From IMG/VR virus record IMGVR_UViG_3300042558_003926, positions 62,001-126,000 of that record: 64,000 nucleotides of DNA; one strand, 5' to 3'. This document shows positions 12,206 to 43,916 of this stretch, piece by piece (the stretch's first letter is position 1; every line of letters begins with the position of its first letter). The notes below the pieces were generated by a model. That model made no database searches, was not told where the DNA came from, and saw only the letters and a program-made list of their open reading frames with translations. A program made the translations under genes and the position numbers.

Positions 12206-15200
12206 ATGGCAGATTCTAGATTAAAATTTTTTAACAAGCAGGGAAATCCTTTAAATTTAGATTATATCGGACCAACCGGACCAACCCCGCTTGATGCTAA
12301 ATTTACATACATAACGAATTCATCAGGAGCACCAAATCCTGGTGATTTGGATATAACTGATTATACAACATACTACGAATTCCTCTTTAATGAGAATGAC
12401 CTTAATACATTCAATCTGGTTTCTTGGTACAATGAGATCGTAGACTACCTATCAAAGGGAGCGGAGGTATTTTTAAATGGAGATGTGATAGGAGCTAAAA
12501 GCTTTAGAGCTAAAATTTCTTCGATTAGCATCTCAGGTGGACAAATATCAGTTAATCTTCTAAAAGATTATTATCAGGGTCAAAGTATAATAAGTGTCGG
12601 TAATCAGATTTATTTCACGACGACATATAAAAATAGACCAGGAGGATATTTCAAGGGTAATATTTATTTCGATCCGGTTTCAACATCCCTATACGAGAAT
12701 GAGCAGATATTTATAGTCCAGGAGCTTTATAACGTCACAGCATCCCAGATGCAATATGGTCTTCCCCATGCTGGATTTACCGGTGCAACATCTGGTGCAA
12801 CGTGGAGAAGTCGATGGTATAATGATAACTACGGGGAAACCGATGTTACTGATATCATATTTACTTATTCTATTGAGGATCAATTAGAAGGCGGAGACGG
12901 AGAACCCCTTATTGTTAATTATCCCAATATGACCTTCTCTGTGGATTTATCCGCATCGGATTATTATGCTAATGGATATCTAAATACAACTAGTGTTAAT
13001 TCCTCAGCACTTGGAATAAACGTAGCTCTAAATGGGTCGGATGAAGCTGAAAGTGTTTATGAGAGAAAACTAATTATAGACGACATCTCTTCAGGAACAC
13101 CAGAGAAAGTTTTAGAGATAGATTTTTATGGTCAAATAATAGGAGAGGATGAGAGATTTAAAGTGATGCTCCAAAATTTCGGAAGAGCCTTCTACAAAAG
13201 CGATTCTGTTATTTTGAGAGATCACGATCCGGATGAACCTTTACCAAACTATCTGGAGATAAACGAAAAAAGAAAAGAGCTTCTTATTGCTGGAGATGAG
13301 ATATTCCCATATATGGGGAGTTATAAAGGACTTATAAATGCAATCAAATTCTTCGGGTACCAGGATTTAAGAATCAAGGAATATTGGTTAAATCTAAATT
13401 ACAATTCGATAAGTAGCGAATCTCCGATACAGCAGAACAAGCAATTTCTTGATGTAATAAGGGCTCAACAGAAAGGTGGCTATTCCATGTCTTACCAGGT
13501 TGGAGACATCTTAGATAACGAAAACTCTGGAAAATATAGGCTCGTACAGACTTATGGTCCTAATGCTAATGGTGAATATGTACTTGACGTTTCTTCTGAA
13601 GAAACACTAGTTCCGAGCAGAACCTACAAGAAAACATCATTATTTGGTCTTTATTATGATTTAAATAAGGTTACTCAAGAATTCGATGAATATGGATACC
13701 CTGTAGTTGTAGATGCTTTTAAATTTACACAGGAGGAGGTTCTCCTTAAAATATTCGCTCTCAAGGAAAGATTAAAAAGAGATTATCTTCCTTTAAATGC
13801 AAGAATAGTTGATATTACTGGAGAGGGAGTATATTTTACCGTCTATAATACTAGATCCTGGACTGATATCATGGAAAGATCCGATATTGAATCTGGATTT
13901 GCCTTTGATTTTTATCCGAATCCCGACTTTGGATTTTTGGAGGATCTTAGAAACTTTTCTCTTCGACCGCAGGTAGATGATTTACAATCACCAAGTTCAT
14001 ATAACAACTATTATACAGCGGATGTTAATTTCATAGGAGGAACCGGAAGTGCTATATCATTTACCGGAGATTTTCCGTATGGATTTACTGGACCTAATCC
14101 GACTATTACAATTAATGCAGGCAAGACCTACCAGTTCGATGTTATTGATAGTGGGGACTATGGATATGATTTTGTAATTACGACTAATCCTTCTTACACA
14201 CAAGTAGATCCATTAGGTATACAGAATAATGGCGCTACCGGCGGGGAATCTATTATTTGGTATGTTGATCCGGAACAGACCGGAACTATGTACTATTATT
14301 CTTCGGCTAATGGACCTTTGATGAGTGGAGAAATAAATATTCTACCCTCTACGATATCCGATTTGGGTAATATTGTGGATCCGCTAGATTCTCAACAAGT
14401 TCATACACCAGCTCAGAATGCATCGTTGGTAACCGCTATAGGAAATTTCTATGACTTAAAACAGAACGGTAAAATATTAGAACTGGGGGATGGTAAGTAT
14501 GATCCTCCAGCTTATATAGATCCGGACACCGGGGAGTTATATCAAACTCCTATAGGTATGCCTGTTATATTGGAGCTTATCCCCGATGTGTGGACATGGG
14601 ACGAGATGAACATCAGTTGGTCATCGGTTATTATTCCGGCTTTTAAGGTGGGAGATTCGGTTCAGGTTAAAGCAGCAGGAACTTATTTCGGAGTATTCGG
14701 TACGGTTACTCTAGTAAATTATTCGACGGGTCAATATAGCGTTTTCCTCGATCCACCATACAGCACTACTGTCATTTTTGATGAAGCGGATCTTTATTCA
14801 ACAAATCAACAATATTTACTCCTTACATGGGGTAATGTCGATTTCTCTAATATGATGGAGATAGAGTGGATATTAAACAAGAGCGCAACACAGAGTGGAA
14901 CCCCTTATTATTTTGAATTTAGAGGACCTATAGCGGACTTTTATAAGCTCGCTCACTTCATACCCCACACCGGAGAATATCGTGTAACGTGCAACGTTTA
15001 TGACGCATTCAATTTTAAGAATACCGTAATAAAGGATGCCATTATAAAGGTACAACCTAAGGTTATAGACATAGATACTTGGACTAGATACAGAGAGGTT
15101 GAGTTTTATGAATGGGAGAACGTAGACAGAAGCTGGAACGATTATTCTTCAATCTGGGAATATCCAGCAGAGGGTGAAAGTATTGAGGTATTAGAGAAAA

Positions 15201-16411
15201 AAATACCATCTGAGATTCTAAAATTTGCTGCATATGGAAACAAATCGGAGGAAGGACAGAGTGTTCTAGTAAAAACCGAGCTAGATCCTGTTGGCGCAAC
15301 TGGTGGAATTACATTTACCCAGAGCATCATAAACATTTCGGAGATTTATTCGTTACAAATTTTTGCTGGTCAATATGGATCAGCAACCATAGCGACATCA
15401 TCACCTCATGGTCTATCTGACGGAGATGAAGTAACGATAATTGGAAGTATTCCACAAATCAACGGTAGATGGGTTGCTGGGGTTACTGGATCCGCTAGTA
15501 CTTTTAAAATCCAGACGGTTCTCGAAAATTCGTGGAGTGGGGTTGTTTCTTTAACCTCACCTACTAGATATTCGGTAGACGGCACAATTTATACCGCTCA
15601 GAAAATGACTGGTGCGGGTTCGATTTCCATAGAAGTAGGTGGAAGAGAAATTGGATATAGTGAGTGTGGAGATTCATTATATCATAGCGCTAATTATATA
15701 ACTTCAGCAGTAAATAAGCTAGTAACATACCCTGACTATTATGCTTCTTGTACCGACCCCACCGCAGATCCTGTAACTATAACCATATATGCTCCTGATT
15801 CTCTAGGAGCGGACCAGAATGGGGTTTCTTTAAATCCTATACTCACCGGATCTCTCTCTTTGGTGTCATCCAGTACCGGATTAACCGGAGGAGTTAGTCC
15901 GGTGGAGACGTACGTTGAATGGTCTGAGAATAGCTCGACATACCCGAACGATAACCTGAAATACTGGGGAACTAAAAATCTGGACTGGCAGATATTTAAT
16001 GATGCTACATGGGAGGATGGATACGCACACAGCTGGTATGATTTTGAGTTCAATAATGATTGGTTAGGTGGATATGAAATACATTCGATCTTACCGGGTG
16101 ATTATTTAAAGGTAACGACGGGCAATACAACCTTCCCCTTCCCTACTGGTATAACTTTTTCATCCGGTGCCACTACATTGCAGGATGTTGCCGATGAACT
16201 AAATAATTCTGGAGAATCTCACATAAATAACTTCTGGTACAGACCAATACCATCGGATGCTGGATCTCTAAGTACACTAAATCCTCCGATTAATGTTTCA
16301 GTAGCAACCGTAGGAGTTTCTGGGAGTACTGCATCAGTTCCTCCTTCAGCTATAGGCGGAAGTTCGTTATTGATTCCTGGATTCGGATACACCGGACCAA
16401 CAGGACCATAA
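12206..16411 (+). CDS. Large baseplate wedge protein (gp7 / P2 gpI-like segment plus accessory domains)
   Basis: 1401 aa; YMGSYKGLINAIKFFGY..LRIKEYW resembles the gp7/gpI motif; PKD-like GEYRVTCNVYD segment; position after gp6. Confidence 0.6.
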   Translation: MADSRLKFFNKQGNPLNLDYIGPTGPTPLDAKFTYITNSSGAPNPGDLDITDYTTYYEFLFNENDLNTFNLVSWYNEIVDYLSKGAEVFLNGDVIGAKSFRAKISSISISGGQISVNLLKDYYQGQSIISVGNQIYFTTTYKNRPGGYFKGNIYFDPVSTSLYENEQIFIVQELYNVTASQMQYGLPHAGFTGATSGATWRSRWYNDNYGETDVTDIIFTYSIEDQLEGGDGEPLIVNYPNMTFSVDLSASDYYANGYLNTTSVNSSALGINVALNGSDEAESVYERKLIIDDISSGTPEKVLEIDFYGQIIGEDERFKVMLQNFGRAFYKSDSVILRDHDPDEPLPNYLEINEKRKELLIAGDEIFPYMGSYKGLINAIKFFGYQDLRIKEYWLNLNYNSISSESPIQQNKQFLDVIRAQQKGGYSMSYQVGDILDNENSGKYRLVQTYGPNANGEYVLDVSSEETLVPSRTYKKTSLFGLYYDLNKVTQEFDEYGYPVVVDAFKFTQEEVLLKIFALKERLKRDYLPLNARIVDITGEGVYFTVYNTRSWTDIMERSDIESGFAFDFYPNPDFGFLEDLRNFSLRPQVDDLQSPSSYNNYYTADVNFIGGTGSAISFTGDFPYGFTGPNPTITINAGKTYQFDVIDSGDYGYDFVITTNPSYTQVDPLGIQNNGATGGESIIWYVDPEQTGTMYYYSSANGPLMSGEINILPSTISDLGNIVDPLDSQQVHTPAQNASLVTAIGNFYDLKQNGKILELGDGKYDPPAYIDPDTGELYQTPIGMPVILELIPDVWTWDEMNISWSSVIIPAFKVGDSVQVKAAGTYFGVFGTVTLVNYSTGQYSVFLDPPYSTTVIFDEADLYSTNQQYLLLTWGNVDFSNMMEIEWILNKSATQSGTPYYFEFRGPIADFYKLAHFIPHTGEYRVTCNVYDAFNFKNTVIKDAIIKVQPKVIDIDTWTRYREVEFYEWENVDRSWNDYSSIWEYPAEGESIEVLEKKIPSEILKFAAYGNKSEEGQSVLVKTELDPVGATGGITFTQSIINISEIYSLQIFAGQYGSATIATSSPHGLSDGDEVTIIGSIPQINGRWVAGVTGSASTFKIQTVLENSWSGVVSLTSPTRYSVDGTIYTAQKMTGAGSISIEVGGREIGYSECGDSLYHSANYITSAVNKLVTYPDYYASCTDPTADPVTITIYAPDSLGADQNGVSLNPILTGSLSLVSSSTGLTGGVSPVETYVEWSENSSTYPNDNLKYWGTKNLDWQIFNDATWEDGYAHSWYDFEFNNDWLGGYEIHSILPGDYLKVTTGNTTFPFPTGITFSSGATTLQDVADELNNSGESHINNFWYRPIPSDAGSLSTLNPPINVSVATVGVSGSTASVPPSAIGGSSLLIPGFGYTGPTGP

Positions 16412-16437
16412 TTTATTTTCTTAAGCTTTTAAAGCTC

Positions 16438-16445
16438 GATATATA
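16438..16445 (+). promoter_or_regulatory. Late promoter motif GATATATA
   Basis: Intergenic, 15 nt before the ATG at 16461; recurrent motif. Confidence 0.65.
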
Positions 16446-16460
16446 AGAAGATTAAATTTT

Positions 16461-18206
16461 ATGGCAGACGAAGTATTACCAATAAAACAGGGAGACACAA
16501 TTTATTTTTACGATACCACTGTCGGTGACGTGGCTTCATATTCATGGCAATTCACAGGGGGAACACCATCTACTTCTACAAGTCCAAATGAATATGTAAC
16601 ATTTAACGGAACTAACGAAGGTGGTTATTCAGTATCATTCAACGTTACCTCTTCTTCTGGTATTACTGTAGGAATTACGAAAGATAATATTATATCTGTT
16701 AGTCCAGAAACCATATCTTCCGCATTTACACTTGGGTCCAGTAGTAGATTAATGAGTCAACAGCAAACATACACATCCGGAGCAACAGCTAGTAGCGGCA
16801 TAGCAAATTATGCATGGACAATTCCTGGACTAGGATCAACTTCAGGGTCAAATAAGACATCGGTTTCATATACGGCGAATGATTGGTATAGCATATCTGG
16901 TACTTATTTAGGCGCGGTTAACAGTTCATATTTAGCAACATCAACTTTAAGCATTAGTAGTAATGTACCAAATACATCATCAACTAATCAGAATGTAACA
17001 TATTATAAAATGGGACCAGCTGAGATATACGATCTTGATGACGTCGGATTAACCGGTCCTTACTATACACCGACCATTTCTACTAGAAACTCGGGAGATT
17101 TGGGAATAGGCGGATCCTCTATAGTGGTAAAAATAGACCAATCCTCTAGTTGGAGCGGAATGAAATTTGATAATCAATACACGCATTCAAGTGATGAGGT
17201 TCTGTACTTCTACCCTAACACGGTGGATGTGTCTGGAGGAAGTTCGGCTACACCAATCAGAACACGGATTATACTTAACAAATCCCAATTAGATATCGAG
17301 GGAGCATCCTACACGGAAACCCCTACAGAATTTACATCAGGAAGCTACATTTTGCCTTCCGGTATATTAAATATATTTGATTATACTTTCTATATAACCG
17401 ACTACACTACCACCTCACCGAATGTTCTAACAAATTTAATAAACGTGAGAGGGTGGGATCAAGATTCTGTCGCTGAGCTACTGAAAAACACCTATTATAA
17501 ATCGGCTTCATCAAAATATATTGAGACCGTGAAGTCTTCATCAATATACGGACAGGAATTGCTCAAAAATGCAGAATACGGGTATGATTGGACTGGAGGA
17601 TATGATGCCTCATCTCCAACTTCACTAACTGGAGTTATAGTTCCATCGTCTAAATTCTTTGATGATTATTTGGGTAAAAGTGGTGAAGTATCAGTATCAC
17701 TATGCATTGACGTATATGATGAATCGGAATCACTATTAGATTCTCTTAAATCTGATATTTCAGTAGCTGGTGCTACCGGAAACTCTCCAGATGGATACTT
17801 AGTTACCTCTCAAGATAGTGTATATGGATCTCTTAGAGGAATAGCATGGCATCTTCAGTCAGCAATAAATCTTAGCAGTTTTTCAGATAATATCATAATA
17901 GAGAGTAGTACTAAATTTATCCCTGATTTTTCGAATAGCAATCTTAATTTTTATGGAATAAGGGTTTCTATAGTTGATCCTTATAGCTCAACTTATGATG
18001 CTAATATTGGATGGATAGAAATATATTGGGATCCTACATATGTCGACCAATTACTAGGTATAGGAGGGGATCGTTTAGTAGATGTTCCATTCAGTAATTC
18101 CACTCCTAATACCGACAGCTTTAGTGGTCTTCCCGAAAAAATAGGAAAATTTACAAGCCCACAAAGTACAAAAAGAGGGTGGAGTATAGGAGGAGCTGTT
18201 GCTTAA
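16461..18206 (+). CDS. PKD-domain virion structural protein
   Basis: GDTIYFYDTT.G..ASYSWQFTGGTPSTSTSPN..VTF...GGYSVSFNVT is a PKD repeat; Ser/Thr-rich. Confidence 0.7.
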   Translation: MADEVLPIKQGDTIYFYDTTVGDVASYSWQFTGGTPSTSTSPNEYVTFNGTNEGGYSVSFNVTSSSGITVGITKDNIISVSPETISSAFTLGSSSRLMSQQQTYTSGATASSGIANYAWTIPGLGSTSGSNKTSVSYTANDWYSISGTYLGAVNSSYLATSTLSISSNVPNTSSTNQNVTYYKMGPAEIYDLDDVGLTGPYYTPTISTRNSGDLGIGGSSIVVKIDQSSSWSGMKFDNQYTHSSDEVLYFYPNTVDVSGGSSATPIRTRIILNKSQLDIEGASYTETPTEFTSGSYILPSGILNIFDYTFYITDYTTTSPNVLTNLINVRGWDQDSVAELLKNTYYKSASSKYIETVKSSSIYGQELLKNAEYGYDWTGGYDASSPTSLTGVIVPSSKFFDDYLGKSGEVSVSLCIDVYDESESLLDSLKSDISVAGATGNSPDGYLVTSQDSVYGSLRGIAWHLQSAINLSSFSDNIIIESSTKFIPDFSNSNLNFYGIRVSIVDPYSSTYDANIGWIEIYWDPTYVDQLLGIGGDRLVDVPFSNSTPNTDSFSGLPEKIGKFTSPQSTKRGWSIGGAVA

Positions 18207-18218
18207 AATTAATAAAAT

Positions 18219-21200
18219 ATGCCAAGTTATAATATAGCCATAAATCAGATAGACACAGACAACGAATTCTTCGTTTGGGGATGTGGACAGGATCTAAGAA
18301 GATTCAACGGTTCATCTTGGGAGTATTATAATTATACAAACTCAGCAGTCCCAAGCTCGTCTCCCTATTATTTAGATACTAGATCGATTTCTATAGATCC
18401 GGAAGAAAAGGTTTGGTGTGGGGTTGCTCAAGGACCAACTGCCGGACTAAATGAAGTTGCAGTTTTTTATGTGAATTCAAATGATGTCTATGAAGGCCAA
18501 AGTTGGAATTTTTCTGATCTTGGAACTTTTAATGAACCTCAGGAGATTTCTCATATTTATGCTTCCCCATTTGGTGATGATATACTGGCTTTTTCTACTC
18601 CTTTGAATGGTGTAGGTGGAACAGGAGCATCCGGATACGTATCTAGTGAAATAACTGGGGTAACCGGGGGAAGGATGTTCTATCATTTAAAGGAAACAGA
18701 CGAATGGAAAGAAACTGCTCCCGATTACATATGGCCTCATGTTTATGACATAAAAGCTAAAGGATATGACGGTAAGGATTATTTTTATTATTTCGGAACA
18801 GCAGAGGGCCTTTTTATAATTCCACAGGGAACATTAGAATACGCTACTTTGATTGGTGGGGAAAAATATCTTGAACAGGTAACCGTCTATAACACTAAGA
18901 CTAGCGGTATTATCTCAGACTACATCTACAGCTTAGATTTAGACGAGGACGGTAATTTATGGATAGGAACCGATATAGGATTATCATTCTTTGATGGATA
19001 CCAATTCTGGAATTATCCAGTTTCCACCGGTCCGATAACAAAAGTTGTTTCTAGACCTAACGGTCATGTTTTTTATGCCTCGGGAGATGGAGAATTGTCG
19101 CAAGGAACTGGCATATGGCATTTTAATGGAACCACTCACACCCAATTCAACTCTTCGAATTCTAGCATACCCGATAATAATGTTCTTGATATTAAATTGG
19201 TTAATAGAAACATAACTCAAAGCGGACTAACCGTTTATGAGAATTCTCTTTGGGTTCTGAGTGTTAATGAAATATCTGCTTTTAATTATGACATTCCCCA
19301 CGTATATGGATCTTCTAAATATGAGGGTGCTACTGGATGGAATTTCACCTATTTTACAGGAACGGGAGGAACCGGTGCTCCTTTACCAAAAGTAGATAAG
19401 TACACTTGGCTATATCCAGATTGGAGGATATATCAGGATGATTATTTAGCTCTTAAATTTCCAGGATTGGATCCTAGAAATTTATTTTTAACTACCGAAT
19501 TAAAAGCAATAGCAGATGGAAGAGCCGGAAAGCAAGCATATTGGGATAATTGGCCAATAGCTTCTTATGAAGAATCCATTCTGGTAGAATCCATAACAGG
19601 TCCGGATTGGAATTCTGCTATACAAGTGGTTCAGCAATCTAGTGCGGGTGTTACTGGTTATGTAAACATCACCTCATCAACATCGATATCAACTAAAGAT
19701 GGAATTAAATACTACGTTGGTGGTTATATAACTGGTGATATTGTGGCTATTTTTGGGTATTATAATGATTCGGGATTAGCTACTCTTAGCCAAATAAATC
19801 CAACTATAGGAGGATCGACCGATCCCGGTATAGACGACTACAGTTCTTTAGACAACGGTAAAATGGGATTCATAGTTTCATATAACGAAAAAGGTAATGT
19901 CGATTCGATACTTCCTTTTAGAGGATATAAAACAGAAATTCAGGATCTTGCTCCATCACCAGATGGAGACTTTATAGTTGCTACTGGTATATTCGATAGA
20001 TTCATAGAAAGCGGTCCTTATGTTTGGGATTCCAAAGAGGGTGAGGTTGTTTTAAGGGGTGGACCCACTGGTGCTCCTTCGGGGGTTACCACGAGGAATG
20101 TTCAGGGCTTAACATCTGGTTCATATTCATGGATTTATCAGAGTTCAATTATAGTTACCGAAGATTGGGAGTATCTACCCGGAGACTTTGGACAGACTTC
20201 TACCAAATTTGATTTAGGATTTAATGGATCTTCTGAATGGGAAAACATATACCAGATATACGTAAATTACGATTCGCTGGGTTCGAATTTATCCGCTTTC
20301 ATGGATCAGGTAGTGACAGCTAATTCTATTTATTTAGATAATTATTCTTCAGACTTTGCTATTTATAGAATAAATTCTATTAGCACTTTACCAAATAATC
20401 CTACTGGGTTGCTTTTTAATGTCACATACTCTGATTTCCAAGCAGCTGGAGCCGTTTCTGGACCATTTTCTCAGATCAGCGGGGATACATTTTCTCTTCA
20501 ATTCTATGATTCGTCAATAAATTCATATCCTCTAGTAACGGATCTTTATTCCAGATCTACAGTTTGGAATGCTAATAATTACTTAGCTAATTCCATATTT
20601 GTTGCAAAAATAGGGTCTGACTTGGGTAACACCTTTACTTTTACTGATTTAGCAGCTACTGGGGATTATAATAGAAATATAAGGAGTTCTTATAGAGGAC
20701 TTTCGTTCAGAAATTTCCCAGGGAGATACTTTTTAAATTCTAATCTGGGGGATATAAAGGAATCTAAATTGGATGTTACGAAATACTCAGTTAATCTAGG
20801 TTTAAGATCTACTCCATATTTTACAATCGGGTCTTCTACTGCGGATCTTAGCACTCTAAGAAATGAATGGAACAGAACGAATGACTATACAACAGCTCCT
20901 AGCCTTATTTTAGGATCGACTACCGACATTTCGCAGAACTGGACGTATGATTCCATATTATCTTATGTTAGATTATCAGCGGATGATCTAGCGTTAATAT
21001 CAGCATCAACTTCCCAAAGCGTATATCCTGGAATCGGTCCGACCTCTGCAGATAGAGAGATTAAATCTGTCAGATCTATACAAGATAATAACTCGACACT
21101 AATAACCGGTGTTTCAAATAAGAACTTTAATTTTGGCGGAATCGGGATAACTGGAACAACCAATGTGTATACACCTTTTTATGAGATATTGTCCCCTGAT

Positions 21201-22295: not shown

Positions 22296-22297
22296 AT

Positions 22298-23246: not shown

Positions 23247-23276
23247 TTTCGCTTTTAAAACAAACAACTAACAAAA

Positions 23277-24182
23277 ATGGCAACTGTAAACATTAATGAA
23301 ATTTTAGGCTCGGATTCGATTTCCGGATCGAGAGTAACCATTAACTCCAATTTCTTGACTCTTCAAAACTGGATAAATGGATATGTTAACGTATTTGGGA
23401 TCGATACTGTTAATGGAATTTTAGATCTCACTGGTGCTTCCACCGGTAGGGTTTCAGCTAAGATTGGTAAATTCGATTCTGTGTCTTTACCTTCAACCGG
23501 GGTTTCTACCGCATCGATTAATAATCTAGGACAGGCATCATTTGCAAGCGTTCAGACAACAACATTAACCGCATCCGGAGCTGTTACCGCTTCTTCGTCT
23601 ATTACATTTGGTACTTCATCGGTTTTTGTTGCCGGCGGAACCTCAAGCTTTAATGGACCTTTAAATGCAAATGCAGCTTTGTATTTAGGAACACAAGGAC
23701 ACGTAGTTAGTCAAAATACAACTTATGCAAGTGGTGCAACCGCAGGAACAGCATTCCCGATTAACACTGCCGGTGGAGGTGGACGATACACATCAGTAAA
23801 CTCTCCTTATGCTATAACTGGTCTAGAGGATGTTATTTATGCTGAGTGTGGTCCAACCGGATTCTATATGAAAGTTGTGGATGGTACATCTCCAGTAGGT
23901 GGTACTCTCCCTAACTTACCACAGGGGACTAGAGTTACTATAGTAAACACTTCTGCAGCTACTGGATATATTCGTACAGGGGTAACAGGATCTAGTAGCT
24001 ATTACACTGGATTTAATACCGCTTCTACTTATGGGGGATTTTCTACTACTGGTATAGTTATACCGCAGAGTAAAGCTTATAGATCTTCTATTACTTTACA
24101 ATGGGAACCTAGAGTTGCTCAAGGACAGGCTACTCAAAATGGATCTTGGGTGGTTATCGGATCAGCTAATATGACGGTGTAA
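23277..24182 (+). CDS. Short fibre-like virion protein
   Basis: N-terminal EILGSDSISGSRVTINSNF anchor related to the fibre N-termini at 35537-40473; Gly/Thr/Ser-rich. Confidence 0.55.
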   Translation: MATVNINEILGSDSISGSRVTINSNFLTLQNWINGYVNVFGIDTVNGILDLTGASTGRVSAKIGKFDSVSLPSTGVSTASINNLGQASFASVQTTTLTASGAVTASSSITFGTSSVFVAGGTSSFNGPLNANAALYLGTQGHVVSQNTTYASGATAGTAFPINTAGGGGRYTSVNSPYAITGLEDVIYAECGPTGFYMKVVDGTSPVGGTLPNLPQGTRVTIVNTSAATGYIRTGVTGSSSYYTGFNTASTYGGFSTTGIVIPQSKAYRSSITLQWEPRVAQGQATQNGSWVVIGSANMTV

Positions 24183-35533: not shown

Positions 35534-35536
35534 GGA

Positions 35537-37108
35537 ATGCCAATAACTAATATCCAGTACATAAACAGCGGAGACGATGAATCGGAATTTATAGATAAGG
35601 TAAATCATAATTTCGATGAAATTATAGAAGCCCACGGAGGATCACAGGGTATCGTAGGTCCGACAGGTTCTATAGGAGCATTTGGCGATTCTGGTATAGG
35701 TGGACCTACGGGTGTATCTGGTCCTAGAGGCACCAGATGGTTTGCTCAATCAACACAACCTTCGGGGAGTGGTAACACTGTAATTGAAGGTGATTTTTGG
35801 GTAGAGACCTCATCGGGTGACATCTATGAGTTTACTGAAAGTGGGTGGACAGATACTGGATATTCAATATCCTCGGGATCTTCCATTTTTACCACCGTAC
35901 AATCATCCCAAATTGCTGGTGGCACGGGTAACTCTGTTTTATTAAATCAGGTCCTTCCTGAAAATTATGTCTTTATTCTGGCAGACGTAATACCAAGCTC
36001 GGGTGTTTTAAATGAAGGTCTTTCTAAATTTGTCATATCATCAGATACTACTGTAAATGATTCTCCACTCCTTGAATTTTCTAGAACTGATTTAGAAAAT
36101 GGTACGATATCGGATTACTCCTTACATCCAACTTTTGAGTGGCTAAATTTTTCATCCACTAATAGAGGAATGCTATTACAGATCCCCGGAGGAGCTTTTT
36201 ATATTGGAGCTTCGGGTGGATTCCAATCTATAGCTAATGCTCTAACAATAACATCTTCTACTAGCAGATTTGAGGTTAACTATGGTACAACTTCGGGATC
36301 TGGAATATATTCAACCGGTGGAATCAATATAAATTCACCTGCTGGTACTTTCGAATTTATTAGTCCATATTTTAATGTAACTGGACCTTCTGGCTCAATG
36401 AACGGACCGGTTATTTCATCTATGCCCTCATCTCCTTCTTCGAGTCTTCCTTATTCGGTATATCTTTACTCCGGAGGTTTATCGGCAACTGGGGATTCTT
36501 TAGTTACTAGTAGATTGGGCGATACTTTTGATAAGCTATCACATAACGTATATCATATTTCTTTAGAAAATTCACAAGGGAAGGAATTTTATATAGATAC
36601 CAAGGGAAAAATTCTGACGAGGAAGATATATTCTCCCATAACATATGGCAGTGTGTATTCTTCAGCTACTGGGACAGTTGGATCTAATCTGGTTAACTGG
36701 TATACTATTACTCCCCCGTTTTCATTAACTGGAATAAGATTGACAAGTGGAAACACCATGGTTCTTACACCTTATTCCATACCAACAAGTAGCTATATTG
36801 GAATAGGGATTTCTAATATAGTTTCGAATGGGCTGGGTACTACTGGAGGAATACAAAACAACGAGTCTATAGATGTTAGTGTTTATTTTTCCCCAAATTC
36901 AACTCAGACGAATTATTCCGATGGAATAAAATACATCGGAAAAAACACATCAGCTATAGCGAGTACCACTAATGTGGTTACCCTTCCTTTTAATGCTAGA
37001 TCTATAGATTTTACTATATCTAGAGGTGTTACTGGATCTTCCACAACTAGCGTATATTATAGGGCTTATGGTCCTACCGGAGGAAGTGGAGGATCTTTTG
37101 TTCTTTGA
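35537..37108 (+). CDS. Collagen-like tail fibre, paralog 1
   Basis: INSGDD...DKVNHNF anchor, Gly-X-Y run (GSQGIVGPTGSIGAFGDSGIGGPTGVSGPRGTRW), GDFW...GDIYEF. Confidence 0.75.
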   Translation: MPITNIQYINSGDDESEFIDKVNHNFDEIIEAHGGSQGIVGPTGSIGAFGDSGIGGPTGVSGPRGTRWFAQSTQPSGSGNTVIEGDFWVETSSGDIYEFTESGWTDTGYSISSGSSIFTTVQSSQIAGGTGNSVLLNQVLPENYVFILADVIPSSGVLNEGLSKFVISSDTTVNDSPLLEFSRTDLENGTISDYSLHPTFEWLNFSSTNRGMLLQIPGGAFYIGASGGFQSIANALTITSSTSRFEVNYGTTSGSGIYSTGGININSPAGTFEFISPYFNVTGPSGSMNGPVISSMPSSPSSSLPYSVYLYSGGLSATGDSLVTSRLGDTFDKLSHNVYHISLENSQGKEFYIDTKGKILTRKIYSPITYGSVYSSATGTVGSNLVNWYTITPPFSLTGIRLTSGNTMVLTPYSIPTSSYIGIGISNIVSNGLGTTGGIQNNESIDVSVYFSPNSTQTNYSDGIKYIGKNTSAIASTTNVVTLPFNARSIDFTISRGVTGSSTTSVYYRAYGPTGGSGGSFVL

Positions 37109-37114
37109 TATATA
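37107..37114 (+). promoter_or_regulatory. Late promoter motif GATATATA
   Basis: Overlaps the stop codon of fibre 1, upstream of 37136. Confidence 0.6.
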
Positions 37115-37135
37115 ATGTAGTAAAAAAAATAAGAA

Positions 37136-38803
37136 ATGTCTGAGCTAAAACTTCTAAGGATAGAGGACGGGGATTCTCAAAAAAATATCTCTGATAAGGT
37201 GAATTACAATTTCCAGGAAATTGTAGCTTATGGCGGAGGTCCATATGGGAGGATAGGCTCTGAAGGACCTCAGGGATTTAAGGGATCAGTGGGTCCTACT
37301 GGATCATATGGTGATCCCGGATTAAGAGGATCTATATGGACAATTGGTCCATGTCAACCTAGTTCAGGAATTAATGGAGATTACTGGATGGACACTGATG
37401 ATAGCAATGCGGTTTATGTCTTTTCTAGCGGTGGGTGGTCTTTATATGGTGTATATGCTTCATCGAATGATCTATTTGATGTCATAGGGCCAATAAGTAC
37501 TTCGTCAGGTTTATCCACAAAATATGGATATTTCCTATCTTCGGGTTCTCCTATATCATACACTATGGTTCTAAGTGATGCCACTATATCCAGTGGATCT
37601 TCAACTTCACCTAATCCTGTACCAAATCCACAATATTCTAAAATGGTATTGTCTATTTATGGCAATGATTCTAGTAAGAATATTATGGAGTTTAACAAGG
37701 GATTGTACCAATCATCAGTTTCATATAGTTCTAGTACTCCAAAATTTTACTGGCTACAGGGTGCTACTGCGGAAAGAGGATCATACGGGTTAGGATTTAA
37801 AAACGGGGGAAAAACTGGATTCAGAACTACTGCAGATACCCTAATACAATCTACATCAGGAGCGGTGGAGTTCAGCTCTACCGGTATAAACATAAATTCA
37901 TCTTCTACTAACGATCAGCTTGTATTTAACCTATCTAACGGGATAACATTTAATACCGGTACTGGAACAGCGTATTTTTCCGCTAGTAATTTTTCTTATG
38001 ATGGAAGTAAATTTACCCTTCCCCTTCAACTTAGATTACAAACAAATTCTAATTTACCGTCCCTTACCATACAATGTGATAAGTTTTATGACAGTGGTAT
38101 TAGATATTATTACGCAGGTCCCAGCACATCTCTTGCAACCTTAATGAGTGTGAGACAAACTCAGAGTATTATAAACTTATTTTGGGTCTACGGGAATGGA
38201 TTAACGTATCTTTACAGGAGGGTAAACTCAATTCAAAACACACAATCGTTGGTCTCTACGGTTAATTCCACCGTTAGCGGAGTTACTATAGACTGGATAA
38301 CTCTAATACCTACTGTTGCCACTTCGGTCGGGACGGGTAATTACGTTTGGGTTAATAGAGGAACCGATATCTCTACTGCCAGATCAACCTCAACGGGTAA
38401 TCAGAGAGGAGTTTGTCTATGGACTCCAGCAACAGGAGGAACCGCTGGAATATACAATAAAGGTTGGCTTAACCTATTAGAGAATGGGGAGGCTATAAAT
38501 TTAAGAGTTCATGCTAACAACCCATCTTCTACAGGGGAGCTTTTCCGATATGTTGGCTTAAACACATCGGAGAATCAGGCTCTTGCACCCAATAACACCG
38601 CAGCATCTAATTACTCTTATGCAGATTTAACCGGAACTAGTTTTGTTGGCGCATCAACAATAGATTTTACAATAGTTAATATACAAGGGACGGGAGGAAC
38701 ATCGGGAGCAAGGAGATGGTTTAAGGTTTATTATTCAGCATGGGGAGGTGGATTAACAGGAGCCAAATGTGGAGTTTTATCAACATATAATGCTACAGCT
38801 TAG
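37136..38803 (+). CDS. Collagen-like tail fibre, paralog 2
   Basis: IEDGDS...DKVNYNF anchor; Gly-X-Y run ending GLRGSIW; GDYW. Confidence 0.75.
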   Translation: MSELKLLRIEDGDSQKNISDKVNYNFQEIVAYGGGPYGRIGSEGPQGFKGSVGPTGSYGDPGLRGSIWTIGPCQPSSGINGDYWMDTDDSNAVYVFSSGGWSLYGVYASSNDLFDVIGPISTSSGLSTKYGYFLSSGSPISYTMVLSDATISSGSSTSPNPVPNPQYSKMVLSIYGNDSSKNIMEFNKGLYQSSVSYSSSTPKFYWLQGATAERGSYGLGFKNGGKTGFRTTADTLIQSTSGAVEFSSTGININSSSTNDQLVFNLSNGITFNTGTGTAYFSASNFSYDGSKFTLPLQLRLQTNSNLPSLTIQCDKFYDSGIRYYYAGPSTSLATLMSVRQTQSIINLFWVYGNGLTYLYRRVNSIQNTQSLVSTVNSTVSGVTIDWITLIPTVATSVGTGNYVWVNRGTDISTARSTSTGNQRGVCLWTPATGGTAGIYNKGWLNLLENGEAINLRVHANNPSSTGELFRYVGLNTSENQALAPNNTAASNYSYADLTGTSFVGASTIDFTIVNIQGTGGTSGARRWFKVYYSAWGGGLTGAKCGVLSTYNATA

Positions 38804-38805
38804 AT

Positions 38806-40473
38806 ATGAAATTTAATACTAAACAAATATTCCAGGGAGATTCTAAGAATGACGTAGTTGACAAGATTAATTATAATTTTGATCAAATACTTTCATTCGG
38901 GGTTGGCCCGGATGGACACGGAGGACCTAGGGGAGCTACCGGCATATTTGGACCTGCGGGTAAAAAAGGAGCAACGGGATTGAGCGGTTCTAGAGCTAAT
39001 AGATGGGATTCTGGTAGCAATCAGCCTTCCAATTCTACACAATACGATCTGTGGATAAATGACAATGGAGATCTTGATTCGTATAGTGCAACAGGTTCTT
39101 GGAATTTTACTGGATTTAACTTTTATAATTCCCTATACTTTAAATTATATAATTGGATTCAAGGACCAGCTGGTGTTACTGATAAGTATGTTATTGGATT
39201 TAAAGATACACTAACCGCTTCTAGCTATTCTTTTGTTGTAGGCGACAGCTCCTTATCTACATCAGATTCTAATCCGAATAAATCTAAGCTAATAGTTTCT
39301 ACAGGGGATCAAATAACTAGACCGATATTTTCTTTTGAAAAATCCGGATCATCTGCTACTGGATTTCCTTCATTCTATTGGGAGTCATTGGGCAATTCAA
39401 ATAATTTAATCCTAGATTCATACGGGAATTTGAACATTGTCTCATATCTTTCCCTCCGTGTTACTACTGCAACTAGCGGAAGAATACTATTGGATTCAAC
39501 TAAGACAGTGATTAATTCGCAGAGCAGATCATATTTTACCGGGAATGGGGATTTAAGTTTTAATACAAATACGACTGTTGGGTCGGGGTCACCTTTTTTG
39601 GTAAGTGCAAGTGGGTTTGATATCACCAGTACGGAATTTTTATCATTCCCTAATTTTTATATAAGAACATATAACTTTGGATCCACCGGTGGATATGCTC
39701 TAAACTCCTCTCCTTCGACCGTCATCAATGACGGCGGTATAAGATTAGAGGTTTTGGATTCTAAGGCAGATAGGGTTTTTCAATTTAAGGATCTTTCTGG
39801 ATCTTCAGTTTTATCTGCTAGACCGGTATCAACACTTTCCACTGCAGGGGATATGGGACAGATCATATTTGGTTCAACTGGATCATCTGCTGGAGCAACT
39901 GCTGGACCTTATTCATATCACGTATCCAAAGCTAAACTTCTAAGGTATGCAACAACAAATACAAGTGCAAGAAGCTATCTTTCTTCTTGTTCGGCCACAT
40001 CTACTAATGTTAGAAACGTATTTGAACTTACATCAACTGCTTTTGATAGTAGTGTTATAGTCATAACTCCTACCTCATTTAGCGCTTTAACTAATTTTGT
40101 TTACATAGGAATACCAACTGCACCGGGAAGCACTCTTAGTAACGTGACTATATCATCCCATGTTAACACATATAGGATAATTCTAGATGACATTAGTTCT
40201 ACTTCACTTCAATATTACTTAAGAGGGATTGTATATTACTACTGGACATCTAACAATACGGGTTGCTATAAATTTGCTGACTTTAACACCGACGAGACTT
40301 GTCGATTTGTTGATCTTACATACATACCCCCCGCTAATTCTTATAATGCAAATCCCAGGATTTTTTATAAGACATGCTCCGGAACAAGCGGATATTTAGA
40401 TCTGGGAGAAGTATATGCGATAACTTCACCACCGGCATCAACAACGGGTTCAGGAGGATCCTCATCATCTTAA
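38806..40473 (+). CDS. Collagen-like tail fibre, paralog 3
   Basis: IFQGDS...DKINYNF anchor; Gly-X-Y run ending GSRANRW. Confidence 0.75.
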   Translation: MKFNTKQIFQGDSKNDVVDKINYNFDQILSFGVGPDGHGGPRGATGIFGPAGKKGATGLSGSRANRWDSGSNQPSNSTQYDLWINDNGDLDSYSATGSWNFTGFNFYNSLYFKLYNWIQGPAGVTDKYVIGFKDTLTASSYSFVVGDSSLSTSDSNPNKSKLIVSTGDQITRPIFSFEKSGSSATGFPSFYWESLGNSNNLILDSYGNLNIVSYLSLRVTTATSGRILLDSTKTVINSQSRSYFTGNGDLSFNTNTTVGSGSPFLVSASGFDITSTEFLSFPNFYIRTYNFGSTGGYALNSSPSTVINDGGIRLEVLDSKADRVFQFKDLSGSSVLSARPVSTLSTAGDMGQIIFGSTGSSAGATAGPYSYHVSKAKLLRYATTNTSARSYLSSCSATSTNVRNVFELTSTAFDSSVIVITPTSFSALTNFVYIGIPTAPGSTLSNVTISSHVNTYRIILDDISSTSLQYYLRGIVYYYWTSNNTGCYKFADFNTDETCRFVDLTYIPPANSYNANPRIFYKTCSGTSGYLDLGEVYAITSPPASTTGSGGSSSS

Positions 40474-40496
40474 AAATAAAATAAATTATATCGAGC

Positions 40497-40760: not shown

Positions 40761-40761
40761 A

Positions 40762-41595: not shown

Positions 41596-41603
41596 ATTAA
41601 AAA

Positions 41604-43916
41604 ATGGCTTTTACTACAACATCTAAATTTGTTCAGATTACTCCCTTTCTACTAATGGAGTACATGTATGCTGATGAGCCTACCCCTGAATCCTATTTCG
41701 TAAATACAGGATCAACCACGGTGGGCTATGAAAAACTTGTGAATGGATATCTAAGTAATGACATCCAGATTTTCAACCCTGGTGTTGATTATTCAATCAC
41801 TCATAATACTTCAGATGATAGTGTTGTTAGAATAAGCGAATCCTCTTTTGTTACCCTGGATTCAAATCTCATAATACCTTTTAACGATTATAGTGACGAG
41901 CTAACTAATACATCAAGTCTTCCGGTAACATTTCCCTCGAACTTATTAGTTGTTTATGATTCGGTAAGGTACCACATCAGAGCGGGATATAATTTGAATA
42001 ATATAGACGGCGTTGTCATGTCTATAGAATACCAGGATCAGGATCTATCATATGTTACTGTTTCTCAAATAGTAATTAAGAAAGGGACACAACAATTCTA
42101 TGTTTTAAATCCAAATCCTATAAACATAGGAGCAAATATTTACGACAAATACTTCGAGATTAAAATCCCTAATCTGAAAGATATGGGGGATAAATATCTA
42201 GCTGCTTCATCTACTTTTAAACCGCAGACTCTGGCTTCTTTAATAAGTAAAAGCGGGGATGGATTTGTATATGGTGCTCCTATTAGAATTAGTGCATGGC
42301 AGATTCAGAACACTGTCGATTTCAACGGATACGAAAGATATAACACCGCTAAAATATCTACTCTATCTTTAGAGCAGGAAGATCCTTTCGCTAATATAGG
42401 AGCAACAATAAAGGAATCTGATCAGGGACAATTCTTTGAATATTATGCAACTGATAACGAGGGATTTGTTGAGGATTTCATTCTTTTTCAAAACTCAATA
42501 GGGAATGGTTACTATATAAGCCACGAAATAGAGGTTCTTGAGCAAATTGGAGCAGCTTTGATAAAAACTTCACAGTTTCAGTCAATCCAGACCACAGCAT
42601 ATGACTCACCTAATTATTATAGGCCAATCGTTAAAAATGCCGGAGTTGCTGTTAGCTTTATGCTAAGATATACTATGTCCTTAATAAACAGTGTGGATCA
42701 ATCTAGAATTACCAGAATCTCCACTTACACTTCAAATAGTCCTTCTCAGTGGGGTACAACTATAACTCCTTTACAACTTAGCAATTTCCCGCAGGTTCAG
42801 AAGATATACAATAGAGTTTATGATCAGCCTCAAATTAATGTTTCAGGAGGATCTATGAACATTAGACCTAAGGAGATAGTTAAATACGTAAACGTTTTTG
42901 TCGATCAGAATTTTGTTACCGCAACAGTGAGCAATCTAAAATTTGCAAACAATAAATTAAGTTCAGAAAAAGGTGCTGGAGAAACTATAGCGTACGGAAC
43001 CGGTAAATTGACATTCTCTATATCTCCATTTGATAACTTCTATAAGTTCTCGTTTGTAAAAAGCGGACCGTCGGGAGACCCTGTTCAAATAGACCTTAGT
43101 AATTCGGGTAAATTTAATATCTCATTTGTCAATTCAAATGGGAATAAGATACAGGTTCCCGCACTAGATGATAAAAATTTAGCGGATCCGGTTAAGGGAG
43201 AATTAGCTTTCAAAATAGATGAATCTACATCAACACAGATTCTCCAACTGACAGATAGAAGATTCTTTGTTACCAACGGAACTACAGTAAACCCGGGGGT
43301 TAAAAGTGTTACTGATAGTACCAAAAAGAAAGTTGCAGCAGGAAAGAATGCTCTAGAAAATACAATTCAGGCTGTGGTACAAGCAAGGAGAGCACAGGCT
43401 AATGCTATAAAGGGCTCAAATGTAGTAGTTTCCCCTTCTACCGATAGTGTGCTTGGATCTGTTAATAACACAAATTCTGTTATGTATTGGGGCTATTGGA
43501 AGAAGGAAGGTGAGGAGGATTTTGTAACCGGAGCAACCGGAGATGCTTCGGTTTCTACGTTTACCTCAGGAACTAGTGGTAGCGGATTCATAGGAACTCT
43601 AGAATCACCAGCTACACCTTCGGTTAAATCTATTAAGCCTGCTTCAGGAACATCAGGAACTGCTTCGGTTGGAACACCTACTTCGGCTCAAACAAATCAA
43701 GTTCTAACTGGGGCTGCACTCATAGCAGCTCTAAGCGCTGAAATGGCAGGATATAAAGCTATTGGATGGAAGGATGCCATGATTGTTGATTACTTCTTAA
43801 TCCCAGGAAAGGCTGGAAGGATCAAATATCCAAATATAACTGTTGATGCTGTTATCAAGGCGGGTGACGGCATACTTGCTCCAGGAACAATTGACGACTT
43901 GAAAACAAGAAAATAA
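41604..43916 (+). CDS. Hypothetical structural protein
   Basis: 770-aa ORF in the structural operon; low-complexity C-terminal linker. Confidence 0.55.
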   Translation: MAFTTTSKFVQITPFLLMEYMYADEPTPESYFVNTGSTTVGYEKLVNGYLSNDIQIFNPGVDYSITHNTSDDSVVRISESSFVTLDSNLIIPFNDYSDELTNTSSLPVTFPSNLLVVYDSVRYHIRAGYNLNNIDGVVMSIEYQDQDLSYVTVSQIVIKKGTQQFYVLNPNPINIGANIYDKYFEIKIPNLKDMGDKYLAASSTFKPQTLASLISKSGDGFVYGAPIRISAWQIQNTVDFNGYERYNTAKISTLSLEQEDPFANIGATIKESDQGQFFEYYATDNEGFVEDFILFQNSIGNGYYISHEIEVLEQIGAALIKTSQFQSIQTTAYDSPNYYRPIVKNAGVAVSFMLRYTMSLINSVDQSRITRISTYTSNSPSQWGTTITPLQLSNFPQVQKIYNRVYDQPQINVSGGSMNIRPKEIVKYVNVFVDQNFVTATVSNLKFANNKLSSEKGAGETIAYGTGKLTFSISPFDNFYKFSFVKSGPSGDPVQIDLSNSGKFNISFVNSNGNKIQVPALDDKNLADPVKGELAFKIDESTSTQILQLTDRRFFVTNGTTVNPGVKSVTDSTKKKVAAGKNALENTIQAVVQARRAQANAIKGSNVVVSPSTDSVLGSVNNTNSVMYWGYWKKEGEEDFVTGATGDASVSTFTSGTSGSGFIGTLESPATPSVKSIKPASGTSGTASVGTPTSAQTNQVLTGAALIAALSAEMAGYKAIGWKDAMIVDYFLIPGKAGRIKYPNITVDAVIKAGDGILAPGTIDDLKTRK

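Follow-up and report, generated by a model that had tools for sequence, protein, structure and literature searches.

Why a short peptide motif, Gly-x-Thr-Gly (G-x-T-G), should recur throughout the virion proteins of a 290-kb jumbo phage (IMG/VR record IMGVR_UViG_3300042558_003926) is the question raised by the window analyzed here, a stretch of 64,000 nucleotides corresponding to positions 62,001 to 126,000 of that record. The initial annotation had noted G-x-T-G and the related GAT[GAS] in consecutive structural proteins at 12206-43916 of the window, and had inferred a convergently acquired Thr-centred tag on exposed loops, for example for O-glycosylation or for docking of a decoration protein. 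The observation is confirmed, and is stronger than was stated: all eight example sequences given are present in the proteins to which they were assigned, and the 14 structural ORFs of this region (10,421 aa) carry 46 G-x-T-G motifs, in 11 of the ORFs, against expected values of 7.2 when whole proteins are shuffled, 8.8 when shuffling is confined to 20 aa and 10.5 when it is confined to 10 aa; 0 of 500 shuffles reach 46. GAT[GAS] occurs 19 times against 1-2 expected. The control patterns are near expectation (G-x-S-G 17 vs 10, G-x-A-G 7 vs 4-5, and the reversed G-T-x-G 16 vs 7-10), and the flanking genes carry few motifs (1 vs 1.3 expected at 1-12 kb and 3 vs 1.1 at 44-64 kb). Among 48,000 three-residue patterns G-x-T-G is the top outlier in 16 virion proteins (55 vs 8.8, z = 15.5), whereas there is no enrichment in the other 337 ORFs of the phage (23 vs 19.2), which do not avoid the motif either, nor in the virion proteins of T4 (6 vs 6.6).

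The signal lies at the peptide level, as the initial annotation had proposed. The DNA pattern GGNNNNACNGG occurs 46 times in the coding frame, once in each other frame, and 1/1/0 times on the antisense strand. Codons vary, although Thr is encoded by ACY at 36 of 46 motif sites compared to 476 of 824 sites elsewhere (Fisher p = 0.0055). The motif is usually followed by G/S/A/P and is often doubled as G-x-T-G-x-T. It does not reflect a collagen-like triple helix: runs of 9-10 G-X-Y triplets occur only at the N-terminal ends of three fibre paralogues and hold only 5 of the 46 motifs, the other 41 being isolated or doubled.

The proteins of this region that carry the motif are all encoded on the + strand. 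The first, at 12206..16411, is a 1401-aa baseplate-distal protein (p12206) with 10 G-x-T-G (aa 22, 190, 611, 626, 676, 1030, 1092, 1225, 1394 and 1397; 0.84 expected) that ends in GYTGPTGP; in two orthologues (62-68% identity) 7 and 5 of the 10 sites remain G-x-T-G, some with x changed. It is followed at 16461..18206 by a 581-aa protein with 2 motifs (aa 196 and 437; 0.49 expected), one GATA (aa 107) and a weak PKD-domain hit, and at 18219..22295 by a 1358-aa multi-beta-propeller protein (p18219) with 10 motifs (aa 133, 147, 370, 383, 477, 615, 976, 997, 1005 and 1152; 1.12 expected). A 301-aa Gly/Thr-rich protein at 23277..24182 has 2 motifs (aa 192 and 235; 0.72 expected) and one GATA, with site 235 kept in both orthologues, and a 732-aa protein at 24204..26402 has 2 motifs (aa 174 and 180, AGTTGAYGMTGA; 0.18 expected), both kept in both orthologues. 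The 1202-aa conserved virion protein (phrog_29329) at 26420..30028 has 1 motif (aa 982; 0.55 expected) and 2 GATA; its homologues identify the distant kin of the phage (Lak, PAU, PTm1 and MA9V), from whose hosts the host phylum is judged to be probably Bacteroidota. A 1828-aa protein at 30047..35533 has 5 motifs (aa 210, 483, 891, 1209 and 1212; 0.72 expected), including GSTGATAG and GHTGSTGG.

Three fibre paralogues related at their N-termini come next. The first, at 35537..37108 (p35537; 523 aa, with tail-fibre PHROG hits), has 6 motifs (aa 41, 56, 128, 434, 497 and 512; 0.92 expected), the first two in a 9-triplet collagen-like run; the second, at 37136..38803 (555 aa), has 3 (aa 53 in a collagen-like run, 225 and 539; 0.82 expected); and the third, at 38806..40473 (555 aa), has 4 (aa 43 and 55 in a collagen-like run, 292 and 356; 0.53 expected) and GATA. 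The last protein of the block, at 41604..43916 (770 aa), has 1 motif (aa 643, VTGATGD; 0.34 expected). Just beyond it, at 44495..44734 (+), a putative 79-aa ORF ends in GYTGSTGQKIVPPSL, with 2 overlapping motifs (0.02 expected), and resembles the C-terminal end of p12206. Only the three fibre proteins are detectable paralogues by BLASTP among the 14 window proteins (the sheath and capsid protein were not in that comparison). The motif thus spans unrelated folds, as it is also found in a sheath insertion (aa 341-600; 6 vs 0.63 expected from the composition of that region itself, and none in the conserved core) and in variable insertions of the capsid protein. However, a Gly-rich fibre elsewhere in the genome (G000 761-2923) has 0 motifs, against about 1 expected, or about 6 at the enriched rate.

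Comparison with relatives shows that the motif is both conserved and repeatedly gained. All 68 related phage contigs show 3.8-9.4-fold enrichment, which is the same over a GC range of 30-43%, and all 120 homologues of p18219 carry 3-19 motifs; in both sets Thr is strongly preferred over Ser. Sites 133, 147, 370 and 997 of p18219 are kept in 89-100 of 101 sequences, retaining G, T and G while x varies, yet the family as a whole holds the motif at 82 distinct alignment positions, with a conserved core and gain and loss elsewhere. In the AF2 model of p18219 (pLDDT 83.6), the one protein that could be modelled, the motifs lie mostly in loops, often just before a strand, and three lie in segments with pLDDT < 50; as only secondary structure and confidence underlie this result, surface exposure is an inference. 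Against a role in glycosylation, Thr in motifs is only modestly better conserved than other Thr (0.68 vs 0.52, p = 0.07), and motif counts in different proteins of one genome co-vary only weakly.

The statement of the initial annotation that no glycosyltransferase is present in the window holds for PF00535 and PF00534. However, the genome encodes at least five glycosyltransferase-domain proteins, together with sugar-pathway genes (a DegT fragment, a PglD-like acetyltransferase and methyltransferases). The nearest, here called GT2c (427 aa, genome 129750-131033), starts 3.75 kb past the window end. Its PF00535 domain scores 27.1 bits (cut-off 23.3) at aa 39-129, D122-A-D124-D125 is invariant in 40 homologues, and the alternating strand/helix N-terminal half of its AF2 model (pLDDT 84.4) is consistent with a GT-A fold. 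A fused C-terminal TPR-like helical domain is indicated by weak hits to several TPR Pfam families at aa 215-260, by PDB hits to designed TPR proteins at aa 214-321, by an all-helical model at aa 212-425, and by structural matches to OGT and consensus-TPR structures. The top six Foldseek hits of the model in the PDB are the peptide glycosyltransferases SunS/ThuS (E 1.4e-14 to 1.4e-12 over 287-393 aligned columns, although with TM-scores of only 0.42-0.47), and the next-best hits (E about 1e-6) are seven orders of magnitude weaker. The best PDB sequence hits are GmaR and SunS.

GT2c is present at 58-87% identity in 15 of 15 relatives tested, while the other four glycosyltransferases are patchy. 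As GT2c is one of many core genes of the clade, this distribution is not specific to it, and it sits among nucleotide-metabolism and replication genes, not virion genes. No homologue was found in PAU, MA9V-1, MaF61 or LR756500, which show 0 to 2.2-fold G-x-T-G at the one locus sampled, nor by tblastn of the phage collection in T4, which shows no enrichment, or Lak-A1, whose locus has too little glycine for enrichment to be judged. Homologues elsewhere are rare (14 of 50,697 phage records). In two other huge phages they lie close to (G-x-T)n collagen-like genes: in Tunturi_5 the homologue (36% identity) is 4 kb from a fibre gene with 66 G-x-T-G, and in LR756502 it is 6 kb from a collagen-like gene with 36. 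Tandem-motif hits occur in 4 of 5 phage groups with a homologue and in 0 of 6 phages without (p = 0.015, not corrected for relatedness). However, LR745206 has a homologue but no tandem motif, a distant homologue in a podovirus goes with no enrichment, and (G-x-T)n collagen-like genes are common in large phages.

Of characterized systems, the glycocin glycosyltransferases SunS/ThuS (GT2 + TPR-like domain; PDB 7MSN, 7MSP, 7MSK), with relatives GccA and EnfC, are among the closest. GT2c matches them over its whole length in predicted fold (E 1e-14, about 390 columns) and matches SunS in sequence over both the GT2 part and the helical-repeat part, with the DxD kept; the TM-score is only 0.44-0.47 because the domains are oriented differently, and identity is 14-16%. 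These enzymes glycosylate Ser, Thr or Cys in a loop of a ribosomal peptide, in the cytoplasm, from nucleotide sugars (PMC12457901; PMC8620827), whereas the substrates proposed here are large virion proteins with many copies of a 4-residue motif. There is no glycocin gene cluster, as the neighbours of GT2c are adenylate kinase, two proteins without informative hits, a GyrB-like topoisomerase subunit and UvdE, and not the Cys-rich precursor peptide, peptidase-transporter and thiol-disulfide oxidoreductases expected of such a cluster. GmaR, the Listeria monocytogenes flagellin O-GlcNAc transferase (GT2 + TPR; structure paper PMC9638930), is the best PDB sequence hit (E 3.9e-6 over the GT2 domain), although only its N-terminal domain is in the matched entry. 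GmaR is a cytoplasmic enzyme that glycosylates a structural protein of a surface filament before assembly; it is also an anti-repressor and thermosensor, and is not known to have a defined sequon.

In BclA-type collagen-like glycoproteins of the Bacillus exosporium, (GPT)n repeats are O-glycosylated on Thr, and thus also present a G-x-T unit followed by Gly. Tunturi_5 gp29 and the LR756501/LR756502 proteins beside or with GT2c homologues are long (G-P/A-T)n arrays of this type, unlike the 41 motifs outside collagen runs in the window. Virus-encoded glycosyltransferases decorate capsid and tail proteins in the cytoplasm in mycobacteriophages (Freeman et al. 2023, Cell Host Microbe 31:1216; cited in PMC12582341) and in chloroviruses and giant viruses (PMC9614988), where the enzyme families and hosts differ and no short sequon shared by a dozen virion proteins has, to our knowledge, been described. 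The motif also differs, as the initial annotation had stated, from the Bacteroidota general O-glycosylation sequon D-(S/T)-(A/I/L/V/M/T), another short Ser/Thr-centred motif, which has Asp at -1, accepts Ser and works on exported proteins outside the cytoplasm; here position -1 is mostly A, V, P, G or S, Gly is at -2 and +1, Ser is not enriched, and virion proteins are inferred to assemble in the cytoplasm.

The main rival to a glycosylation site, doubtful but not far behind it, is that G-x-T-G is a lineage-specific structural element, either a tight turn that caps beta-strands or a one- or two-triplet collagen-like/PPII staple at subunit interfaces of trimeric virion proteins, in which case GT2c would have another substrate and the motif would have spread because it folds or assembles well in these beta-rich proteins. 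In its favor, motifs lie in loops directly before strands, pairs spaced 12-15 residues apart flank strand-like stretches (133/147 and 370/383 in p18219, 611/626 in p12206, 497/512 in p35537), and the best-conserved sites lie in highly conserved segments that a monomer model cannot fold, as expected for intertwined oligomer interfaces; several of these sites could equally be structural. Thr rather than Ser is what a packing or beta-branched role predicts, true collagen-like runs with G-x-T exist in three fibre genes, and an exposed-looking Gly-rich fibre lacks the motif. Against it, the same four residues are enriched in unrelated folds, yet not in non-virion proteins of the phage or in T4 virion proteins, and only 0-2.2-fold in distant relatives sampled at one locus each; gain and loss over 82 alignment positions in variable loops is not predicted by a fold-inherent turn; and enrichment survives shuffling within 10-residue windows.

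It is unlikely, although possible, that the motif is recognized by something other than a glycosyltransferase, such as a kinase or other Thr-modifying transferase, an assembly chaperone, or a decoration or cement protein that docks on G-x-T-G loops. Restriction to virion proteins and clade-wide conservation argue for a trans-acting reader, whatever its nature, and TPR domains also serve as chaperone-type binding modules; however, no candidate reader other than GT2c was found, GT2c keeps an invariant catalytic DADD, and a docking site on at least 12 different proteins, with sites turning over, is hard to reconcile with a fixed lattice partner. A by-product of composition, hidden paralogy or a DNA-level signal is rejected by the shuffling, pattern, frame, BLAST and GC results above, even though the virion proteins are richer in Gly and Thr, T-G and G-x-T are each about 1.6-fold enriched, and three fibre genes are paralogues.

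The interpretation of the initial annotation is therefore supported in part. Peptide-level selection, restriction to virion proteins, repeated gain and a mostly loop location are borne out, and the case is strengthened by a clade-conserved GT2+TPR enzyme of the family that glycosylates peptides and flagellin, while docking of a decoration protein remains conjecture. The reading that fits best, held only tentatively, is that G-x-T-G is a short acceptor loop whose Thr is O-glycosylated in the host cytoplasm by GT2c. The analysis itself establishes the motif statistics and restriction to virion proteins (the motif is over-represented there and neutral elsewhere, with the hydroxyl residue conserved, as a generic O-glycosylation sequon would be), the conservation and turnover of sites, and the family, predicted fold, clade conservation and co-occurrence with (G-x-T)n proteins in other phages of the enzyme; that GT2c transfers a sugar to a polypeptide, that it acts on these Thr residues, that any Thr of this uncultured phage is modified, that the sites are exposed and what a coat is for are inferred, and the location of the strongest conserved sites in segments that AF2 could not model also fits an interface or assembly role. 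In this view GT2c would use its TPR domain to hold protein substrates and its GT-A domain to transfer a sugar from a nucleotide sugar, and the variable accessory glycosyltransferases, methyltransferases and amino-sugar enzymes of each phage could then extend or diversify the glycan. The result would be a sugar coat on the exposed parts of the sheath, baseplate periphery, fibres and some capsid loops, which may serve, for example, in shielding or adhesion.

The 289,651-bp virus contig to which the window belongs (bases 62001-126000) has 37% G+C and is estimated by CheckV to be 100% complete, and its gene content marks it as a contractile-tailed jumbo phage: it encodes a large terminase, a 1116-aa tail sheath, a head protease, an HK97-type major head protein, baseplate hub and wedge proteins, and replication genes including a family B DNA polymerase, a helicase and a gp32-like protein. 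A megablast search of 12 kb of the window against phage records gave no match, and PHROG, Pfam and PDB sequence searches of the motif-bearing proteins gave almost no names. The conserved 1202-aa protein at 26420-30028, however, has distant homologues (24-33% identity) in Lak megaphages of Prevotella, Tenacibaculum phages PTm1, PTm5 and pT24, Chryseobacterium phages, Flavobacterium phage MaF61, Sphingomonas phage PAU and several huge uncultured phages; a Bacteroidota host is therefore likely, although this is inferred. The motif-rich block (12206-43916) lies downstream of the baseplate wedge gene and comprises large peripheral baseplate proteins and fibres. In its middle, on the opposite strand, is a gene for a PhoH-like ATPase (22298-23053, - strand) that holds the same place in all six relatives whose gene tables were examined, and in one relative (locus L020) a GIY-YIG/NUMOD3 homing endonuclease gene (15962-16828 of that locus) is inserted between the orthologues of the genes starting at 23277 and 24204. 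Elsewhere in the window are an S1 RNA-binding domain protein among the baseplate genes (6186-7346), an RNA-ligase-like domain fused to a cytidylyltransferase-like domain (51460-53466; both weak hits), and a 429-aa protein with an OmpA-family domain (58209-59498).

The initial annotation, which reported that G-x-T-G and related peptides recur across the virion proteins, is correct in its observation: all the peptides it cited are present, and the 14 ORFs at 12206-43916 (10,421 aa) hold 46 G-x-T-G. Shuffling controls, proposed beforehand as a test of the enrichment, give 7.2 motifs when whole proteins are shuffled, 8.8 when residues are shuffled within 20-residue windows and 10.5 within 10-residue windows, and none of 500 shuffles reaches 46. 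GAT[GAS] occurs 19 times against 1-2 expected. The motif is specific both in residue and in order (G-x-S-G, 17 vs 10; G-x-A-G, 7 vs 4-5; G-T-x-G, 16 vs 7-10), and the genes on either side of the block show no enrichment (1 vs 1.3 and 3 vs 1.1). The corresponding DNA pattern, GGNNNNACNGG, occurs 46 times in the coding frame, once in each other frame, and 1/1/0 times on the opposite strand; the signal is therefore in the protein and not the DNA. Codons vary, as had been noted, but motif Thr codons end in a pyrimidine more often than other Thr codons (36 of 46 vs 476 of 824, p = 0.0055).

Hidden paralogy does not account for the enrichment, as among the 14 proteins of the window block only those of the three consecutive fibre genes at 35537-40473 (523, 555 and 555 aa) are similar to one another by BLASTP. 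These share their first 200-270 residues, including a 9-10-triplet collagen-like run, and have divergent C-terminal halves, so that they look like a receptor-binding cassette set; only five of the 46 motifs sit in their collagen-like runs. A putative 79-aa ORF immediately after the structural block (44495-44734) ends in ...GYTGSTGQKIVPPSL, which resembles the end of the 1401-aa protein (...GYTGPTGP).

An unbiased scan of all 48,000 patterns with three fixed residues in 16 virion proteins (the window block plus the sheath and major head protein) also puts this motif first: G.TG is by far the strongest outlier (55 vs 8.8, z = 15.5), followed by GAT (28 vs 5.1). In the other 337 ORFs of the genome G.TG ranks 1087th (23 vs 19.2), and the strongest short patterns there (C.NN, 28 vs 2.6; G.PQ, 38 vs 5.4) are accounted for by a tandem array of six paralogous genes of 224-351 aa, plus two more copies elsewhere, that give weak leucine-rich-repeat hits (genome positions 234424-239281, - strand, and 273173-274696, + strand, outside the window). 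The extended form of the motif is G-[A/V/P/G/S]-T-G-[G/S/A/P]; of the 55 motifs, 40 are followed by G/S/A/P and 22 have Ser or Thr two residues further on. A doubled form, G[VS]TGAT[AG]G, recurs in the sheath, the head protein and two window proteins. A full-text literature search for 'GXTG' found nothing relevant.

The enrichment is not a general feature of virions, as 22 T4 virion proteins (11,154 aa) have 6 motifs against 6.6 expected, and loci from PAU, MA9V-1, MaF61 and LR756500 show 0 to 2.2-fold. The regions around the conserved 1202-aa gene in LR756501, LR745206, LR756502 and Lak-A1 contain too little Gly for a comparable evaluation. In the Lak-A1 locus (L094, Prevotella phage Lak-A1, 234805-276880), ORFs of 150 aa or more cover 30% of the sequence under the standard code and 88% when TAG is read through, which fits stop-codon recoding in that phage, as is reportedly the case for Lak phages; the genome studied here shows no such sign, 92% being coding under the standard stops. 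Within the phage's own clade, by contrast, the enrichment is universal. All 120 homologues of the protein at 18219-22295 (p18219; 34-92% identity) have 3-19 motifs, 2.6-15 times expectation, with G-x-S-G at or below expectation, and 68 syntenic loci from IMG/VR (32-83% identity, G+C 30-43%, contigs up to 434 kb) show 3.8-9.4-fold, with G-x-S-G near 1. Co-variation of motif counts between proteins across seven genomes is weak (r about 0.6, computed by hand on genomes that are not independent).

The sites behave in two ways. A core is conserved while x changes: in the p18219 family, sites 133, 147, 370 and 997 are kept in 89-100 of 101 sequences, for example as GVTG, GITG, GSTG or GLTG, and in the sheath, sites 359, 463 and 555 keep G-x-T-G in 12, 11 and 11 of 12 orthologues. 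Many other sites come and go, such that the p18219 family holds the motif at 82 alignment positions; when a site decays, Thr most often becomes Ser, and the last Gly becomes Ser or Ala.

In the sheath all six motifs lie in aa 341-600, a Gly/Thr-rich, less conserved insertion (6 vs 0.63 by that region's own composition), with none in the N-terminal part or in the C-terminal core that aligns with T4 gp18 residues 462-648. By analogy with T4 gp18, whose inserted domains face outward, this insertion is inferred to be on the outside of the tail. In the head protein the motifs at aa 170 and 218 lie in segments that are gaps in most homologues, and enrichment there fades to background below about 40% identity. 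An AlphaFold2 model of aa 100-1200 of p18219 (mean pLDDT 83.6) is a predicted multi-propeller in which the motifs lie in loops, several directly before a strand; three motifs fall in segments with pLDDT below 50, even though those segments are highly conserved in sequence.

The initial annotation also held that no glycosyltransferase is present in the window, and indeed neither PF00535 nor PF00534 finds a match there, but the genome has several: three GT2 proteins, a GT4 fused to an FkbM methyltransferase, and a GT9-like protein. One GT2 of 565 aa belongs to a sugar cluster at genome positions 279788-286871, outside the window, where a sigma-70-like gene is followed by a DegT aminotransferase fragment of only 209 aa (possibly truncated or split), an FtsJ-like methyltransferase, a PglD-like acetyltransferase and this GT2; the cluster lies just upstream of the start of the virion genes if the contig ends are joined. 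This protein was considered as the universal enzyme and rejected, as a full-length orthologue is present in only 2 of 15 large related contigs; no close relatives of it were found in IMG/VR. The GT4-FkbM, GT9-like and small GT2 proteins are also patchy in the 15 contigs. The first two of these, the GT9-like one being a 771-aa heptosyltransferase-type protein, are encoded by adjacent genes (genome positions 159829-164036, outside the window) that occur as a full-length pair in 5 of 15 relatives and as shorter separate copies in others.

The fifth enzyme, here called GT2c (427 aa, genome positions 129750-131033, 3.75 kb beyond the window end), is present in 15 of 15 at 58-87% identity. It has a GT2 domain with an invariant DADD and a TPR domain, and its best PDB sequence matches are GmaR, the Listeria flagellin O-GlcNAc transferase, and SunS, the sublancin glycosyltransferase. 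Its AlphaFold2 model (pLDDT 84.4) has SunS and ThuS as its top six structural matches (E 1e-14 to 1e-12 over 287-393 aligned columns), everything else being seven orders of magnitude weaker and matching only one domain. Enzymes of this family attach sugars to Ser, Thr or Cys in loops of ribosomal peptides (PMC12457901, PMC8620827). GT2c is not in a glycocin gene cluster, and a protein substrate, as for GmaR, is therefore the more natural expectation. A complex prediction of GT2c with the 30-residue C-terminal tail of the protein at 12206-16411 scored 0.19 against a mark of 0.32, which is evidence neither for nor against binding.

Outside the clade, homologues of GT2c are rare, being found in 14 of 50,697 phage records. 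Tunturiibacter phage Tunturi_5, whose sheath is not detectably related to the one studied here, has a homologue (36% identity over both the GT2 and TPR parts) 4 kb from tail fibre gene gp29, which carries 66 G-x-T-G in (G-P/A-T)n collagen-like runs; the rest of that genome is at or below expectation. In LR756502 the homologue (24% identity) lies 6 kb from a 1937-aa collagen-like gene with 36 motifs, whereas LR756501 has very large (GPT)n genes far from its homologue, and LR745206 has a homologue and no tandem motif. Podovirus MW202524, which has a 25%-identical homologue, shows no enrichment. PAU, MA9V-1, MaF61, T4, LR756500 and Lak-A1 have neither homologue nor tandem motif. The resulting tally of 4 of 5 with a homologue against 0 of 6 without (p = 0.015) ignores the fact that the genomes are not independent, and collagen-like Thr-rich genes are common in large phages, so this association is supportive rather than decisive.

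The enrichment is confined to virion proteins of one clade, spans unrelated folds, is conserved yet mobile, and requires Thr, which points to something that reads G-x-T-G in trans; the only candidate reader found is a core enzyme of the family that glycosylates peptides and flagellin. Cytoplasmic O-glycosylation of the motif Thr is therefore ranked first, though tentatively and as less likely than not. The proposal of the initial annotation, a convergently acquired Thr-centred tag serving for example in O-glycosylation of the virion surface, is partly supported: the analysis establishes that selection is at the peptide level, that sites are gained repeatedly, that the enrichment extends to a whole clade and that a plausible enzyme exists, whereas the modification itself, action of GT2c on these residues and exposure of the motif Thr are inferred.

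The main rival, possible but somewhat less likely, is a structural turn or a collagen-like micro-element at oligomer interfaces. It explains well the Thr preference, the paired sites 12-15 residues apart, the conserved sites that a monomer model cannot fold, and the absence of the motif from a Gly-rich protein encoded at genome positions 761-2923, outside the window, a 720-aa fibre or spike with about 14-residue 'NIAIG'-type repeats and a C-terminal segment that looks like an intramolecular chaperone, which has 13% Gly but no G-x-T-G. A different trans-acting reader is unlikely, and an artefact of composition, paralogy or DNA sequence is very unlikely in view of the shuffling, BLASTP, and frame and strand controls.

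Virus-encoded virion glycosylation and GT2+TPR protein glycosyltransferases are both already known. In its broadest form, which the data do not exclude but which remains doubtful, a large clade of jumbo phages and megaphages (170-434 kb) would coat the exposed surface of its virions (sheath, baseplate periphery, fibres, capsid loops) with O-linked sugars, the four-residue sequon G-x-T-G being read by one core GT2+TPR enzyme related to the glycocin and flagellin glycosyltransferases, while accessory glycosyltransferases would vary the glycan between phages. In this view the sequon would be gained and lost in surface loops much as glycan-shield sites are in animal viruses, and would be the single-copy form of the (G-x-T)n collagen-like arrays seen beside the same enzyme in other huge phages.

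Even if the motif proves structural, a four-residue element this enriched, this conserved and this lineage-specific across unrelated folds is a useful marker of virion proteins in this clade, and would be an unexplained piece of protein design. If the motif is a sequon, it would be the first short, predictable O-glycosylation site for phage virions, so that glycosylated surfaces could be read directly from metagenomic phage genomes; it would give SunS/GmaR-type enzymes a new class of substrate, and would link dispersed G-x-T-G sites to the Thr-rich collagen-like fibres common in huge phages. A sugar coat of this kind would bear on host recognition, on stability in gut or water, and on immune or defence recognition of phages.
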